A DNA stretch of 63,605 nt, the filler included, from Hyphochytrium catenoides (Eukaryota; Protista; Hyphochytriomycota): the NCBI GenBank assembly GCA_900088475.1. It is 7 parts of 7 records of this genome, joined end to end, with 100 filler letters (N's around TTAATTAATTAA, not from the genome) between each part and the next. Parts side by side here need not be neighbours in the genome. Positions count along the whole stretch, not along the records: positions 55,828 to 63,605 come from FLMG01001512.1; 6 more parts are not named here. One strand, written 5' to 3'. The position numbers and the translations under genes were made by a program. The notes under the pieces were generated by a model. The model searched no databases, had not been told where the DNA came from, and was given only the letters and a program-made list of their open reading frames with translations. The first letter of the stretch is position 1. Each line of letters begins with the position of its first letter. This document shows, piece after piece, positions 55,828 through 63,605 of the stretch.

Positions 55828-58800
55828 CATGAGAAACGGCAGCCGATTTCTGGAGGTTATCTTCTCTGGACGGCGTCTACAAGAGAGATTATACGGTCTC
55901 CATCGAAGACCCCAAACGCCTGACACCTAGTCTCTCTGCTAAAAGTCCAGATACCCCAACTTTTACTGTACTGTAATCATTCGTAACAGAATCCGCACAC
56001 TTTATACGGGATCAGAATGGGAATTATTCTTCAGTTGTGAGAATATTTACGCTATGTGGTTTAATGTTCCGGAAGAAAATTTTGCTGTTTTTGGCAGGAC
56101 AAGCTCGTACTCGGGCCAAGCAACTTTTTCAGCTATATCCAGGTACAAGTACTTACTTTCGAATTGAAAGTGGATTCCCATCATCTCCATTCCGCTCTCA
56201 CATAGCCAAATCCACCTTCCTTCTGTAGAGGGGGAAAGGGTGTAGGGTCCAAAAAGTGTGGAGTGCCTATAGTCTGCCTTTATTAGTAGGATTCCTAGTG
56301 TCAGCGAAACTCGCTTCTTCTCTTCGTCCTCTTTATCAACTTTTCACCACCACTTCCTTACCCCCTATTCCCCCCCCTTCCCCCCCAATTAATGATGGCC
56401 TTCAAGGTATTCTTGATGGAAAAGCACATCCGGATGATGTCCTCTTATTGGAAATAAGTCCATTGTCACTTGACAATATCCGTCATTCAATCGTTATCGA
56501 TTCTGAGATTGATAGATTGGATGACCGTCTGAGAGAGGGAAATCTCCTCTCTCTCTCAGTTTGTCTTTTTCCCTCTCTCAGTCACGAGTCCCGCCGTCCA
56601 CGGCCGCTTTTGTCTTTCTTTCTCCCTTGGAAGCTTCTGAACTTATTGGAAAACTGAGAAGGCGCAACCATGTCGATTAGCGCCAAAGGAAATCACACAT
56701 TGGGTTGGAGTCATTGAATGTTGTTTACATCAATTAACAATAAACGAACAACGTTCAAAAGCAGACATTGTCTTCATGATAATGACGGTTGTAGAGGACT
56801 TCGTTCGTTCTGGTATCGGACTGAAACCAGCAAACTATGCTCACATTGTGGCTAAGTGGTGCTTGAAGGCCTCAGCGGCGTTAAACCTCAACATTGCTCT
56901 TGTTGTTGTGATTCTCTTCTTCTTACAAGATGATGAATAGCGTGCTGCCGCCGGTCCGCTAAAATAATAGAAAAGTCTTCCTCCAGTTGTTTCCACTTGT
57001 TTCAGTAGAGTGAAGATGAAGAAGAAGTGCCGTTGAAGCTGAAAATTCTGATGAAGAAGGTGACCTTCAGACTGATGAGTTGTTAAGGCGGGCCCCTGTG
57101 AGTTGTCTGAGGCTGCTTCAATGAAGCAGTTCGAATGATTCCTGCTTGCTGAAGATATGAAATGATGGTCTAGGCTGCAAGGCAAACAGTTAATTTCACT
57201 ACGGCTGCTGAGCCTACTTATGAAGCTTGCTTTAGGATGAGCAAATTTAACTTTGTTTAGGAGGCTGAGGACGATGGCCTTCCGCTGGATGATGAAGCGT
57301 GAATGATCACATCATTGAGCTGCTCGAATTGATGAAGGACGTCGTTGCTATCGCCGGCATGGTGGAAAAAAAAAGTACGCTGCTTAATCAGCGCTAAGAA
57401 GGTAAGGAGAATAATGTAGAGAGGAGATATCCATGTCATTTCAGTCGCATTCAACCAAGAGGTCCTCGCGCTTCAATATGAGAGCTCGACAAACAACAAG
57501 TACACACTGTTGTTGGCAGCTTAGCAACTCGGACTTCTTCTTCTTCTTCTTGCCACCCCTGCTGCTCTTTCCTCCAGAAGACAGCTAGTAGGGTAGCTAC
57601 TACCATGATACCACTACTCCTCATCATGTTACCACCTACAGACAGCTAGTAGGCAAGCTCCTCCTCCTGCCTGCTGCTGCTGCCGCCGAAGTAATACAGT
57701 CTGAATATAGTAAGGAAGAAGGCTGGCATAATAGCCGCTTGCATAAGAGAAGCTGATTACTACTTCTGTTTTTTCAACAATCTTCTGAATCTCCACACAT
57801 GTCCTTTAATTCTTGAATGGCAGCTTTGCTTCTCAAGGCAGACGGAAGAAAGTCAATCTACAAAGCTGGAGGTCGTCAGCCAAGTTGTGAAACCGGCGGG
57901 TCTCTCTGCACACCCCAGGTCATTATCTGGCAAGACGCTATTTCTAATTATAACAATAGACGCAACTAACATGAGCCACTACTACTTAGCGTACGTAGCG
58001 ATAAGTTCATTTAGGTTGAGTGTCGTGGCAAAGTATGTGTTCATTGACATCTTACTTGGTAATAGTTATTCCGTCTGTTCCGTCTTACTTACCCTTACCC
58101 TCCCTTAGGAGGGGTTGGGCCAGTGGAAGGCCTATAAGCCTCGATGATGCTGTCGGTATAGCTGCAATGCGTCGTGGGAGGTGTAGCGGGCGGAAGGCCT
58201 ATTGTCAGGCGTCGTCGTCATTGGAATCCCTGCTGGAAACACGAGCGTGTTGTATGGCGAATCGCGTTTAAATTGGAGGGGGCCGCCAGTGGATTTGTTC
58301 ATGATTGTTATGTTTGCGTTGTTTTGTGAAAAAAAAGCTGTTGGTCCTTAATGCTACTAATGGCTTGGTGCTTCCTAGTAGCAGCTTGACTTGAGTGTGA
58401 GCTGGTCAATTGAATAGTGAGCTGGTCTACAAAAGGAGTCATTGTGACCGTCCATCAGGCGGACCAACGTGAGAAACGTAACCCTGACCCCAAAGCGTTA
58501 TCTCGACTTCGCCTTTGTCCATTTAGCGATTTCGTATCGGTTTAATGCTCAGACAGCACCTCCACGTTCCTGGCCACCCTCAACCGACTGGCAGACCTGG
58601 GCAGCTAAGTTTGAAGATCTTCACTTGACGCTACTGCTTACGCTCATATCTGCTCTGCATGGTCACAGATCAAGGTCGAGTCCGGCCAAGCAGAGCTCTC
58701 ATCAATATTATGGAATGCAGAACTCCAATCGCGGCAATAACGCAAGTGACAGTGACAAAGGATATGGCAGTCTGGAAGTCAGTATATAGCTTAGTGCCCA

Positions 58801-59766
58801 TCCTTCAGTCTTCCTTTGTGACCTACAGGATTGGGGGTCAGCACACTCCCGCGAATTTGTCGAGATCGCTGCCTAAGGCACAAGTACGGCTTCCAGGGTC
58901 CAGCAGCGGCAACTGGGGTGTCACTGACCTCTTGAAGCTATCAGCTGTTCTCTCCAAGCTATCAGCTGTCCGATGGGCTCACACACAATTCTGGGGGATG
59001 AGCGCAGGCTTGGTCCATCATCCCAACTCTAGCAGAGACCGAAGAGACACTCCCTCCTCTGCGTCACCAACACTACTAACTCCGCTTATATTAATATACA
59101 GAAAAGCCTCCACATACTTGCGCACCAACCTTATGCGGCTTCACTGAGCCTCTTATTCTTGGTTCAAGTAGTCCAAGACTGCATTAACTTCGCTATTATC
59201 AGAAGGCCATTCGTCGGAACGTTAAGACAGCATAAGAAGCAGCATAGATCAAATGTTTTCCATGATCCTCGCATTGTCGCCATATTGGGATAGCAAGTAG
59301 TGGCTGCTAAGACGATTGCTTGTTATTGGTCGCTAAAGAAGAAGACACGAACCTCTCCGCTCTCCTTGTCGTCGATAGTCATGTCGGAAGAGGGCATAGA
59401 GAATATGGGAAACAATTTTGTCGTCGTGTATTACTTCTGGCGGCATGGTCAACAAGAAGTAAATACTGCAAACGCCCTTACGTACGCATCGTATCGACAT
59501 CTTACTCGTTCAAGTTGCTCGTTCCAGCGTAAAATAGATTCTAATCCTAGCGGCAACACCGCTTCCTAATTATTGAAACAGTAGTGAGCTCTGGGGGTCT
59601 CTATACTCCTAGTTACTCAAGTCATACAAAGACCTATATATTGAGCAGTTCTCTCATAGTCTGACCTTCAGACATGTTGGAGCTTATTACTAGCTTACTT
59701 TTACTACCATGCCACCACTCAACAAGTAAGGAAAGCAGAGTAGTCGGAGCACTCTCGTTGGACATG

Positions 59767-62700
59767 TTATTTGGCAATGACCAGCCGCAGAGGTGGCGCC
59801 TTCACCCATTTCATGGCTTCACGAATATCTGAGTCTTTGACTGTCTTGTAGACTAGATTTTCGTTCATCCTAATGAAGAAAAAGCGAAAGAAAAGGAAAA
59901 AGAACAGGTAGAGATGAGCGCAGAATGCCACTACGAAGAAGGCCGTAAATATGGAGTAGATAAAGCTTGTGGAGCTTGAATCGGTCGCGCCCTCCTCGCC
60001 TGAACTATAAGAACTCCCTGCTGCTGCTGCTGGTGTTGTTGGATAGAAGCTTCCACTCAAGGACCCGTCAGAGGAAGAAGTTGACGACCAGGTAGATGAA
60101 GACGACGTTGAGTAAACGCTCCCACCACTCGAGGCTGATGAAGGTGTTCCACTGTAATAAGAGTAAGACCCGCTAGTGCTTCCCGACCCTGTCACTGCAT
60201 CAGAAGAATACGTTGTTGTTGAGTCGTTCGTAGTGTCTGATGATGTAGAGGATGAGGCAATCATGTCCATCGCTGCCTCCAGGAAGACGTACGAGCCCAG
60301 GCCCATCAGGAAACAACAGAAAAGATGGAAACTAAAATGAACGGGGAGGTATGACAAGAGCTTCCCACTACAGCCAAGCTTCTCACGTTTTGTTGCCACC
60401 TTCTGTTTGAGGAGTTCACCTTCACCATCATTTTTTCCTGGACCTGCCAGCAAATCAAGGACTTTAGGGTAAGAGTAGCCGTAATCCAATCCCATGGGAA
60501 AGCTTGGGTGAGAGGCATGCTGGAGAGCGTCCAGGTACATGTCGAGGTTGCGTGTTATAAGTTCGTGAGCGCACCCCAACTCGGAGCTTTCTAGAAGCGT
60601 TTTTGGCTGTGAGACATCTTTGGGGAGGTAATAGGCTACTAAGGGCGACAGTGACCTAATGGTTGCGGTGGTCACCTCGATCCTCTTGAACACGTGTAGT
60701 TCGTTATCAAGGAAAGCTTCCTCACATAGCAGGTGCTTGAGATAGACCTCATACCAAGCCGTTTTGTATTTGGAGTTCTTGTCAAGCTTGTGAACAGGGA
60801 GCTCTTCCGAATAGACTCCGATAAGTTTGGTGCAAAAGTCGACCACTTTGTCATACTTCTTTTGAGCCTTGTAGATCTCTTTCAAGAGGTTCAGAGAATC
60901 TCGGATATCCACATGCGCCGGACTTAGCCGCTGAACTTGCATAAGTATACAGCTCTCGAGCTCCACCTGAGCGTTCTCGATAGCGCTACCGCTGCTGCTG
61001 CTGTTCTCCTTAGCCGCTGGTTCTTGTTGGGAACTTTCTTTCTTGTGGTCCTTCTTCTTAGCCATGGCGCTACCAGTAATAATCAAGTTCTTCGACATTA
61101 AAACGTCCTCCGTATTCGTCTTAGTTCGATGAATGACTGATTCCGCATTCTTTATCCGTTGGAGGACGTTGGCTTGGAAGAAGACGGAGCTAACACCTTC
61201 ATTGAGCCACCTCAAGAGCTTTTTCCAAGGGCTAGGGTTCTCATACTCCGCCACGGTATGCTGTGCGTAGTACATCAAGGATAGAACATATCTTGCATGC
61301 AGCTGTCGTGGATGATGCTCCTTGAGTTGCTTTCCAAGTTCAGCAATGATCCCTTTGATATCTGCTTCATCCTTAGTATAAAATACAGCTTTTGGCGCTT
61401 TCTCAGCTAGCCATGACTTTTCGTGTATGCACCGTAAGAAGCGAGTTTCGAAGCGACACAACTGGAATTGAAGCGATATCGGGTGATTCTCGTCCAGAGC
61501 TTCTAGATCTTTCCATTCAGGCAATATCGACTCAAGATCATCCTTTGCTTTATCCCATTCGTTCAGACGCATTGTAGTCCACACTTGTTCCAAGCGGAGG
61601 CGCAATTTCCAGATCTCTTGTGATGCTTCCTCAGTGAATTTCTGGAGGAACTTGTCTTTTGGGGTCTTCTCAGCGGTCTCCATTGAAGTAATAGCCGTCC
61701 TAAAAATGCTCCTTGACTCTTCAAGCAAGATGCGGCTCTTCTTGATATCTTTGACGGTCGTGCCGAGAGCGCTCAGGACGAAACCAGCTGTCAAACTGCG
61801 AATGTAGCTGTTCTCATTATCACCGCTCTTTAATTTGGAGATGAAGAGTTCAAGACTTTCAGCTTCCTCAGCCATAAGTCGCAGAGTGACGTAGTTGGGG
61901 TCGCAAAACATAGCGTCGCGAAATCTGATCTCGTTAGGGTAAAGCTGTTTGCGAGTCCATTCGTATCTTTCGTGGGAGCCTTTCTTCTCTCCAGCTGCAA
62001 CCTCCGGAAGAGGAGCCGCTCTCATGGCTTGATGCTCATCTAGGATCATTACTATGGGTGTATCTTCAGGTAAAGGAAGGTTCAAGGGCCCATACGGCAA
62101 ATTGAAGTTTGTCGTCTCCTTGAGCTCATAAAAACCTCCAATCTGGAGCTGAAGTTCGCATACATGCCCGATGGCGCAAGTGCTGCGAAGGCTAAGCTTC
62201 ACATCCCGGTAGCCTCCAGGGACTGGCTTGTCCAAACGACCGAGGGTATTCTTAACTCTTACCACAACGAAAGGACAATTATTCTCGACATCCTTGGACC
62301 CAGGAGCGGCAGAACTTGCGAGGTTATCCTTCCCAGCAAAACAACTTCGTAGAATCCTGTCGAGACCACGAAGGAGATCTACTGCATCCTTGAAGATGAT
62401 GGTAGCTCTTACAACATCAATGACCCTATGGTAGCTCCCGTCGTATTCCTTCTTGGCCTTCTGCGTTATCCTATCCTCAGCCTTAAGCGGCCCAAAGATC
62501 ACATGGGGACTAGTCCCGCTGTCTGCTCCCATGGCAGCAAGCTTGACGATGAACTCGTCAAATTTCTTTTTCACCACTCTAGCATCATTTTTCAGTGTCG
62601 TCGCATCGTAATACTTGCCACCGCTGTGTTCAGGATTTATATCCACCGTCGAATACTCGAGCACCATGTCGGTCTTCTTAAGTACATCCTTCTTTTTGAT

Positions 62701-62913
62701 TACCCTTTCAAACAAGGTATCGTAGTTCGTGGTATCAGCAATGGTACTTGCCACCATGTCAAGCGTATCGATGAAGTTGTCGTAGAACTTTTTGATTTTC
62801 TGGAGGTCCTTCTGGTCGTCGTTGACTTCGTTAGATCGTGGCCCTCCGCCTCCTCTTGACGCATTAATAATTATCTCCCCCTCGGAGGCATGGAAGGGGA
62901 TGATGGCAGCCAT
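59767..62913 (-). CDS. Intronless ~1048-aa protein: N-terminal RelA/SpoT-like nucleotidyltransferase domain, TPR-like helical region, two C-terminal TM helices flanking a Ser/Thr-rich loop
   Basis: Motifs in RSH-synthetase order: GPLKAEDRITQK, DVVRATI, VRVKN, GGYRDVKL, CELQL, HERYE (~62500-61960). TPR-like segments HHPRQLHARYVLSLMYYAQ and AHVDIRDSLNLLKEIYKAQKKYDKV. Hydrophobic stretches at ~60280-60360 and ~59870-59965. Confidence 0.82.
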   Translation of the reverse strand: MAAIIPFHASEGEIIINASRGGGGPRSNEVNDDQKDLQKIKKFYDNFIDTLDMVASTIADTTNYDTLFERVIKKKDVLKKTDMVLEYSTVDINPEHSGGKYYDATTLKNDARVVKKKFDEFIVKLAAMGADSGTSPHVIFGPLKAEDRITQKAKKEYDGSYHRVIDVVRATIIFKDAVDLLRGLDRILRSCFAGKDNLASSAAPGSKDVENNCPFVVVRVKNTLGRLDKPVPGGYRDVKLSLRSTCAIGHVCELQLQIGGFYELKETTNFNLPYGPLNLPLPEDTPIVMILDEHQAMRAAPLPEVAAGEKKGSHERYEWTRKQLYPNEIRFRDAMFCDPNYVTLRLMAEEAESLELFISKLKSGDNENSYIRSLTAGFVLSALGTTVKDIKKSRILLEESRSIFRTAITSMETAEKTPKDKFLQKFTEEASQEIWKLRLRLEQVWTTMRLNEWDKAKDDLESILPEWKDLEALDENHPISLQFQLCRFETRFLRCIHEKSWLAEKAPKAVFYTKDEADIKGIIAELGKQLKEHHPRQLHARYVLSLMYYAQHTVAEYENPSPWKKLLRWLNEGVSSVFFQANVLQRIKNAESVIHRTKTNTEDVLMSKNLIITGSAMAKKKDHKKESSQQEPAAKENSSSSGSAIENAQVELESCILMQVQRLSPAHVDIRDSLNLLKEIYKAQKKYDKVVDFCTKLIGVYSEELPVHKLDKNSKYKTAWYEVYLKHLLCEEAFLDNELHVFKRIEVTTATIRSLSPLVAYYLPKDVSQPKTLLESSELGCAHELITRNLDMYLDALQHASHPSFPMGLDYGYSYPKVLDLLAGPGKNDGEGELLKQKVATKREKLGCSGKLLSYLPVHFSFHLFCCFLMGLGSYVFLEAAMDMIASSSTSSDTTNDSTTTYSSDAVTGSGSTSGSYSYYSGTPSSASSGGSVYSTSSSSTWSSTSSSDGSLSGSFYPTTPAAAAGSSYSSGEEGATDSSSTSFIYSIFTAFFVVAFCAHLYLFFFLFFRFFFIRMNENLVYKTVKDSDIREAMKWVKAPPLRLVIAK

Positions 62914-63605
62914 TGTCAGCACTACTGCTGTGACTCAAGTGAGTGGGTGGTCGAGCTTCTCAGGAGCCCTAATGTGAAAAGTGTGAGGCCGACCAGGCGC
63001 TTGCCCTGGAAAGACAGAAAACTAGACAAGAGCAACTTCGTGGAGCTCGAGAATCTTAAAACTGAAGGCTACTCTCCTCCTGCCAAGCACCGTTCCTCTT
63101 CTTGTGAGGGTAACATGATGCTCAATCGGACTCTTCTCTCTCTCGTCTTCTTCACCAAGAAGCTGACATAGTATTTCTTAGCAACAGCGTAAGCGCGGCT
63201 GTTGTGGCAGTAGGGTGATTGATCTTGAGCAGCTCCTCCTGTTGTTGTTGCCCATCATTGAGAGGAGGGACCCGTACAAAGACAGCATTTCAGCATTGTT
63301 ATCCTCACCAGGAGTAACCCCTAGTTAGCGGCGCCAGGGCTAGCTGCTGAAACTGCCCTACCGTTTAGATCCTGCTAGTTTCCACTATTTGACAGGAAGG
63401 GGCATACATAGGGAATCCTCATGTGGTCCCCCACCATACACGTCTCTATCGCCTTCCCTGTCCTTACCATCACCGCACAACGGTCTTAATGAATCAGGAG
63501 CAAGCCTTTCTTCCTGCGGTCGGAGCCAAACCTTTCCGCTCGTGACCGTAATAAACTGTGGAGTATGAGGCACTCTCGATGAAGCTTAGAAAAAAAGTTG
63601 GTGGG

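Follow-up and report, generated by a model that had tools for sequence, protein, structure and literature searches.

Canonical eukaryotic ppGpp metabolism is plastidial and relies on long RelA/SpoT-type (RSH) enzymes with HD domains. Elsewhere in this enzyme class, adenosine and guanosine 3'-pyrophosphokinases of the Tas1/Apk1 kind are known to serve bacteria and phages as weapons, and a survey of their homologues in 2025 was confined to bacteria (PMC12691689). Synthetase-only RSHs of eukaryotes have been kept since 2011 in an unplaced bin, divRel, with no assigned function; its divergent members come from diatoms (Thalassiosira, Phaeodactylum), Dictyostelium and ascomycetes (Atkinson et al. 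2011, PMC3153485). Here we examine a gene from an assembly of the protist Hyphochytrium catenoides (GCA_900088475.1), which lies on the minus strand at positions 59767-62913 of a joined stretch of 63,605 nucleotides, filler included. This whole stretch is the window to which all positions refer, and its part 55828-63605 comes from FLMG01001512.1. The N-terminal domain of the encoded protein is, judged by sequence and a structural model, a divergent RSH-type synthetase of Tas1/Apk1-like kind, and its C-terminal end is a predicted membrane hairpin. Residue numbers count from the ATG; those of a first-pass annotation of the locus, which counted from a GTG at 62922, are higher by three.

Tas1/Apk1, a type VI secretion effector of Pseudomonas aeruginosa (6OX6), is the best profile match of the H. 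catenoides domain, with which it has additional motifs and the fold (Z 13.4) in common. Its bacterial homologues carry eCIS, PAAR and Mu-type delivery modules (PMC12691689), as do RelA/SpoT-like polymorphic toxins (PMC3482391), and such modules (eCIS/DUF4157, PAAR, Mu/MuF-type) are also found in bacterial members of the family to which our gene belongs. Unlike Tas1/Apk1, however, the H. catenoides protein has no delivery domain and no adjacent immunity gene, sits in a eukaryote-like locus, carries a long helical region and a membrane hairpin behind its enzyme domain, and reads GYRD-V-K rather than GxN at the Syn3 motif. The small alarmone synthetases (SAS) RelQ/SAS1 and RelP/SAS2 (5DED, 6FGK, 6EWZ) have the same fold (Z 13-15) and the same five Syn motifs, but they are stand-alone bacterial (p)ppGpp enzymes of ~200 residues, and they match the profile more weakly, at 2e-8 and worse. 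The divRel proteins resemble ours in being unplaced, uncharacterised synthetase-only RSHs without an HD domain, although divRel is a catch-all bin rather than a defined family, and PMC3153485 mentions neither TPRs nor transmembrane (TM) segments.

Three further systems bear a resemblance in architecture or logic. Fungal NLRs with a RelA_SpoT effector domain (Dyrka et al. 2014, PMC4986451), whose role is presumed to be in defence or incompatibility, carry this domain at the N terminus, as our protein does, and TPR-type repeats follow it in relatives of our protein; these NLRs place a NACHT/NB-ARC NTPase between effector and repeats, whereas the H. catenoides protein has no NTPase and has a membrane hairpin instead. 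The toxic SAS (toxSAS) proteins CapRel and FaRel2 have the RSH fold (Z 14) and the same logic of a toxic synthetase fused to an inhibitory or sensing region, but their profile relation to our domain is weak (E 0.05), and these defence proteins of bacteria and phages have another C-terminal domain. Type III effectors of the XopAD type contain two RelA/SpoT domains, toxin domains that act inside eukaryotic cells (PMC3482391), and relatives of our protein in Guillardia are also tandem; XopAD proteins are injected by bacteria, in contrast to the single-copy, host-encoded domain described here. The enzyme class (RSH/SAS, Tas1-like), the divRel RSHs and the fungal NLR effectors were already known. 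This protein differs from them in its two lineage-specific inserts, a long orphan helical region and a predicted hairpin with a mucin-like loop, and in having no HD, NTPase or delivery domain.

The synthetase domain

The domain was placed through its relatives. An exhaustive phmmer search with residues 91-341 against 1.84 billion representatives, at a cut-off of E<=1e-3, returned 302 relatives, the best at 2.8e-16, with lengths of 121-4564 residues. A word-indexed homologue search with residues 90-340 had given zero matches; this blank reflects a limit of sensitivity, because relatives in that length range did turn up in the exhaustive search. An exact-sequence look-up of the protein gave no record, searches of Pfam, NCBIfam and PDB sequences with the whole protein or with the domain alone also gave no relevant match, and the protein does not reach the gathering score of Pfam RelA_SpoT (PF04607). 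Its relatives, in contrast, include proteins that are recognized by this model: 26 of 95 family domains match RelA_SpoT at E<=0.01, and one of them, P0001, exceeds the gathering score (33.6 bits against a cut-off of 27).

The RSH synthetase motifs follow one another in the expected order: GPLK 141-144 with R148 and K152, D166..R169, R219-V-K-N222, GYRD 234-237, E253-L-Q255 and H314..Y317. The last of these emerged from a realignment in which the query was extended to residue 335, where H314, Y317 and R321 form a final motif behind a 44-residue insert (268-311). When the query is aligned with 94 domain pieces, K144, D166 and E253 are the three invariant columns, and the family consensus reads PLK..R..EK....Y.GD..R..D.VR.S / R.KNRF / GYRD..LN / GHVCELQLHL / GH..YE..R. 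The key residues of the domain are K144, R148, K152, Y157, D166, R169, R219, K221, GYRD 234-237, H250, E253, Q255, K265, H314, Y317 and R321, and the query retains each of the 21 positions that at least 70% of the family conserves, D166 and E253 included. A family hidden Markov model (HMM) built from the 94 relatives, with the query left out, scores the query at 137.5 bits, which argues that the motifs are not due to chance. The two inserts, 191-212 and 268-311, are not present in relatives in the alignment, and Tas1 carries a shorter insert at the place of the second. Weak phmmer matches of residues 30-98 to the first half of the domains of relatives had raised the idea that a second, degenerate RSH copy lies here; the family HMM, run with filters off, finds none.

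Among structures in the PDB, the family profile matches Tas1/Apk1 (6OX6) best, with E 4.8e-19, followed by YwaC/RelP at 2.2e-8 and by SaEAS, an exported Streptomyces synthetase (8VX3), at 2.9e-6; RelQ, Rel and RelA come after these, and CapRel lies at E 0.05. By this gap in E-value between the first and second matches, the domain is closer in sequence to Apk1/Tas1 than to the other RSH subfamilies. Two motifs are specific to the family and Tas1, K..ER...K....Y.GD and, after the insert, GH..YE..R. The Syn3 signature GYRD is specific to the family. In both Tas1 and YwaC, the invariant Asp and Glu of the family fall on the D..R and E.Q motifs.

The predicted fold agrees with this placement. An AlphaFold2 (AF2) model of residues 101-300, computed with the family alignment, has a mean predicted local distance difference test (pLDDT) score of 82.5, and its confidence is low only in the inserts. 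The best 50 Foldseek matches listed from the PDB are all RSH enzymes. In VIA-align comparisons SAS1, Rel, SAS2, CapRel, SaEAS and Tas1 score Z 13.4-14.9 (CapRel 14.1, Tas1 13.4), as against Z 8-9 for TdT, Pol mu, Pol lambda and RsfS from the wider set of Pol-beta-fold proteins; these Z values do not separate the RSH subfamilies from one another.

Taken together, the profile, the Pfam matches of the relatives, the model, the Foldseek result and the Z values identify the domain as an RSH synthetase nearest the Tas1/Apk1 group, and one that is apparently catalytically competent. The first-pass annotation had recognized RSH synthetase motifs from the sequence, and its reading is borne out by the family profile, the fold and the catalytic residues, with RSH enzymes returned both by the profile (Tas1 at 4.8e-19) and by Foldseek (the 50 top matches listed). 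The catalytic Asp and Glu that it saw as retained, D169 and E256 in its numbering, are D166 and E253 here (codons at window positions 62416-62418 and 62155-62157, minus strand), which align with the corresponding Asp and Glu of Tas1 and YwaC. It had also noted the lack of an HD domain, an NTPase and a signal peptide, and Pfam and motif scans were indeed blank: Pfam detects no HD hydrolase, TGS, ACT or any other domain in the protein, there is no HD dipeptide, neither a Walker A motif nor a NACHT/NB-ARC NTPase was found, and no hydrophobic stretch resembles a signal peptide.

Relatives and fusion architectures

Thirty relatives were looked up individually. Thirteen carry eukaryotic labels: five clusters from Guillardia theta, on scaffolds of up to 937 kb (several of these proteins combine tandem domains with multiple membrane segments), two from Cylindrotheca closterium, one from a Bacillariaceae metagenome-assembled genome, one Entomoneis MMETSP transcript and four EukProt transcriptome open reading frames (ORFs). 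None of the 30 has a named bacterial source, the remainder being metagenome or raw-assembly proteins. Some of the Guillardia and Cylindrotheca relatives are labelled 'RelA/SpoT domain-containing' in UniProt. By sequence, the H. catenoides protein is a member of an uncharacterised Tas1-like family found in cryptophytes and diatoms. In a maximum-likelihood tree of the domain it has no supported sister, so that the tree points to no origin or donor; its nearest relative there is 43% identical over 140 columns.

Fusions are frequent in the family. Among 62 longer relatives, TPR_12/TPR_10 repeats occur in 11, LRRs in seven, eCIS_core in four, and PAAR and a Mu portal domain in one each. The TPR_10/12 arrays of the relatives are real and are placed after the same RSH domain. 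Strongly hydrophobic 19-mers are present in 26 of 150 relatives. A metagenomic relative of 579 residues, P0139 (L001 214-1953), combines the RSH domain with a clear TPR_12 array and a C-terminal membrane anchor, and as far as sequence layout goes it is the closest architectural analogue of our protein, with the same order of parts in short form. The P0139 gene occurs on several metagenome contigs, on a longer one of which it lies near genes for a papain-type peptidase and an MFS transporter. Four G. theta relatives (P0002, P0008, P0050 and P0060) have two Tas1-like domains each together with five or more hydrophobic segments; such pairs are reminiscent of the XopAD type III effectors with their two domains (PMC3482391). 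P0092, a metagenomic protein of 351 residues that is apparently a fragment, joins a protein-kinase-like C-terminal end, one hydrophobic segment and a Tas1-like domain, which suggests that fusions in the style of receptor kinases exist in the family.

The first-pass annotation had known of no description of this architecture. A literature search supports that in part, for it finds no paper that describes these protist architectures or tests any member of the family; the layout itself, however, is not unique to this gene, given P0139, and divRel proteins were already listed in 2011.

Gene model, helical region and membrane hairpin

The uninterrupted 3.1-kb ORF reported in the first-pass annotation holds up, with 1048 codons and a stop when counted from the first ATG, whereas the two remaining minus-strand frames contain 45 and 72 stops over this span. 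On this sequence evidence the gene is intronless. The ATG stands in the context gacaATGg and is preceded, three codons before it, by an in-frame TAG; the alternative GTG start of the ORF listing, at 62922, directly adjoins this TAG. Contigs from two sequencing runs, of depth 23 and 207, cover 59500-63200 with zero differences from the window, and both may be source data of the assembly itself. A contig of a further run, X3 (depth 6), lacks one base each at 59894 and 59897, within the T/C-rich run that codes for the second hydrophobic segment, and these deletions would shift the frame if real. They are probably homopolymer sequencing errors; the two deeper assemblies agree with the window. Coordinates of the parts of the protein are collected in Table 1.

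Table 1. Parts of the H. catenoides protein, with residues counted from the ATG and positions in the window
Feature	Residues	Window positions	Strand	Remarks
Whole ORF		59767..62913	-	1048 codons + stop; first ATG at 62913, stop at 59767-59769
N-terminal region	1-100	62614..62913	-	no recognisable domain, no signal-peptide-like hydrophobic stretch
RSH synthetase domain, Tas1/Apk1-like	103-325	61939..62607	-	assigned by profile, fold and motifs
Insert 1	191-212	62278..62343	-	lineage-specific, between helix and RxKN strand; low pLDDT
Insert 2	268-311	61981..62112	-	44 residues, lineage-specific, between K265 and GSH..YE..R motif
Helical region	330-850	60364..61926	-	predicted all-helical; no detectable homologue
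Lys/Ser-rich linker	608-645	60979..61092	-	predicted non-helical, inside helical region
Hydrophobic segment 1	853-886	60256..60357	-	maximum Kyte-Doolittle (KD) value 1.78 over 19 residues
Loop	887-982	59968..60255	-	96 residues, 76% S/T/G/Y, no K/R, one N-x-S sequon
Hydrophobic segment 2, Phe-rich	983-1015	59869..59967	-	maximum KD 2.4
Basic C-terminal tail	1016-1048	59770..59868	-	33 residues, net charge +3

The long region behind the domain was modelled by AF2 from the single sequence as all-helical with a break at ~608-645, with low confidence (pLDDT 38). The first-pass annotation had seen TPR-like segments here, and this part of its reading was not confirmed: Pfam has no TPR match in the protein at E<=10, and hhalign of the region with the TPR regions of five relatives gives a probability of 0.16. 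A word-indexed search with residues 330-860 found zero homologues, and phmmer matched the middle region to relatives only at E>=0.05. A few E/N-H-P and S-L-N-x-L-x-x-x-Y segments within 330-850 are reminiscent of TPR_10/12, and language-model features place the region near TPR_12/TPR_10 clusters at only 0.87, which serves as a lead only. Possibly, this is a degenerate TPR-like regulatory region.

The C-terminal order of TM segment, Ser/Thr/Gly/Tyr-rich loop, TM segment and short basic tail that had been noted at first pass is found in the sequence, with a loop whose composition is 41% Ser and 17% Thr. Its Ser codons are mixed, and Tandem Repeats Finder (TRF) detects no repeat there. Over the last 200 codons, which code for the hairpin, the frame stays open, while each of the other frames has 6-7 stops. 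The charges that flank the predicted segments are +4 in the 20 residues before the first, -2 and -3 at the ends of the loop, and +3 in the tail. These charges obey the positive-inside rule for a hairpin with both termini inside and the loop outside or in a lumen. They thus favour a cytosolic enzyme and tail with an outer or lumenal loop, the same orientation as had been proposed from the sequence before.

The surroundings of the gene are sparse. No ORF of more than 162 codons lies in 55828-59766 or 62923-63605, which make up the rest of the FLMG01001512.1 piece, Pfam matches none of the eight flank ORFs, and no tRNA or Rfam family was found in the flanks. The coding density is therefore eukaryote-like rather than bacterial, and we judge it somewhat probable, jointly with the explanation of the protein given below, that the gene belongs to a eukaryotic microbe. 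Pfam finds no secretion or delivery domain in the protein, and the flanks contain no recognisable gene, for immunity or otherwise. The ~3.9 kb downstream of the gene (55828-59766) are either intergenic or hold intron-rich genes invisible to an ORF listing. The sole tandem repeat in the piece is a C-rich one at 56356-56386 (unit CCTTCCCCCC, 3.1 copies).

Proposed function and its alternatives

Our explanation starts from the identity and fold of the domain, its complete set of conserved catalytic positions and the hydrophobic and charge layout of the C terminus, as read from sequence and model. The first ~850 residues would face the cytosol, with the RSH domain at ~103-325 followed by a helical region of ~520 residues, and the mucin-like Ser/Thr-rich loop, held between two membrane spans, would lie outside or in a lumen. 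With ATP as donor, the enzyme would transfer the beta-gamma pyrophosphate to a purine nucleotide, at its 3'-OH. The helical region may hold the enzyme inactive until a membrane-proximal or cytosolic cue arrives. Once released, it would make (p)ppApp-type nucleotides and drain ATP, leading to growth arrest or death. Some autoinhibition is to be expected, since turnover in Apk1-like enzymes is very high, ~1e5 per minute for SaEAS (PMC12691689), and an unregulated cytosolic copy would be harmful. A role in stress or defence, as growth arrest or cell suicide, would also fit better than housekeeping signalling, because protist members of the family are joined to LRR and TPR sensors and bacterial members to toxin-delivery modules. 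As a whole, this account of a hairpin-anchored, cytosol-facing and autoinhibited Tas1-like synthetase that makes (p)ppApp in stress or defence seems to us slightly better than an even bet.

The choice of acceptor is the step at which the nearest alternative enters. Tas1/Apk1 makes (p)ppApp, and the exported Apk1-like enzymes include both promiscuous and (p)ppGpp-only members (PMC12691689). Guanosine enzymes have been described with SxH at Syn3 and Apk enzymes with GxN, and a swap of the two left specificity unconverted (PMC12226406). In our protein the position reads D237-V-K239, aligned opposite GYSGVN of Tas1 and thus without the GxN adenosine signature, and its Asp is conserved in 99% of the family. 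An adenine nucleotide is the most likely acceptor, giving (p)ppApp, as a best guess by analogy with the nearest characterised relative only. The protein may instead make (p)ppGpp, or purine alarmones promiscuously, in ordinary signalling, for example in stress signalling that starts at a membrane, a view that draws on the RSH fold and motifs, on the several exported Apk1-like enzymes that make (p)ppGpp alone or both products (PMC12691689), and on the ppGpp signalling that Atkinson et al. proposed for eukaryotic divRel (PMC3153485). We consider it unlikely: by profile the nearest solved relative is the (p)ppApp synthetase Tas1, ~11 orders of magnitude ahead of the next match, the guanine-contacting SxH of Syn3 is missing, and the protein lacks the HD domain of the canonical long plastidial ppGpp enzymes. 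Less probable again is a pyrophosphokinase of the tRNA 3'-CCA end that stops translation when triggered, like CapRel/FaRel2. The fusion of sensor and toxin is known for CapRel (PMC12691689; PMC11782079), and its structural match (Z 14.1) equals that of other RSH enzymes, but in the family profile search CapRel scores no better than E 0.05, where Tas1 reaches 5e-19, and Pfam finds no pseudo-ZFD or other antitoxin-like domain.

Two other alternatives question the gene or its activity. The gene model could be partly an artefact, with a 3' end for the hairpin that is intronic or untranslated, or the gene could be a silent pseudogene or the contig a contaminant. The two 1-base deletions of the depth-6 contig (59894, 59897) fall in the run that codes for the second TM segment, and its Phe run is T-rich DNA. 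Against this, the hairpin frame is open for 200 codons where each other frame has 6-7 stops, the loop has mixed Ser codons and no TRF repeat, the assemblies of depth 23 and 207 match the window without difference, the charges obey the positive-inside rule, relatives also carry membrane anchors, and a 3.9-kb flank without a long ORF is unlike a bacterial contig; we hold an artefact to be very improbable. A catalytically dead RSH fold kept as a nucleotide-binding or scaffold module, which the two large inserts absent from relatives (191-212, 268-311) might suggest, seems scarcely credible to us, since the domain retains every one of the 21 conserved positions, among them the Mg-binding Asp and the catalytic Glu, and the inserts sit in loops that are also variable in relatives and in Tas1.

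Several points temper the preferred account of a membrane-anchored (p)ppApp synthetase. The query alone has no Pfam RelA_SpoT match, even at E<=10, and no match to a PDB chain. Homologue and metagenome searches found no ortholog in which conservation of the hairpin could be checked, and of 76 pattern matches to close relatives in metagenomes, 0 were confirmed. A transcribed gene with an unspliced C terminus is a prediction from genomic DNA. The regulatory role of the helical region, which has neither a homologue nor a confident model, is a guess. The acceptor cannot be read from the sequence, as D-V-K at Syn3 fits neither SxH nor GxN, and some Apk1-like enzymes yield only (p)ppGpp (PMC12691689).

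Together with its Guillardia, diatom and transcriptome relatives, the gene links the Tas1/Apk1 weapons of bacteria and phages with the divRel bin of eukaryotes. A wider idea, which we offer tentatively and regard as rather doubtful, is that cryptophytes, diatoms and this organism use host-encoded Tas1-like (p)ppApp synthetases, wired to LRR, TPR or membrane sensors with no NTPase switch, in cell-autonomous defence. If the defence reading is true, infection or membrane damage would release an ATP-draining enzyme, as a eukaryotic counterpart of toxSAS abortive infection in bacteria, and the H. catenoides protein would be a membrane-resident version with its glycosylated outer loop or its helical region as the trigger. 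Residues ~95-330 provide a concrete, intronless single-domain construct for asking about (p)ppApp-type nucleotides in eukaryotic cytosols. If the enzyme is active, toxic-alarmone biology would extend to cell-autonomous stress or immune responses of protists; if it serves ordinary signalling, an orphan family would still gain an enzyme class.

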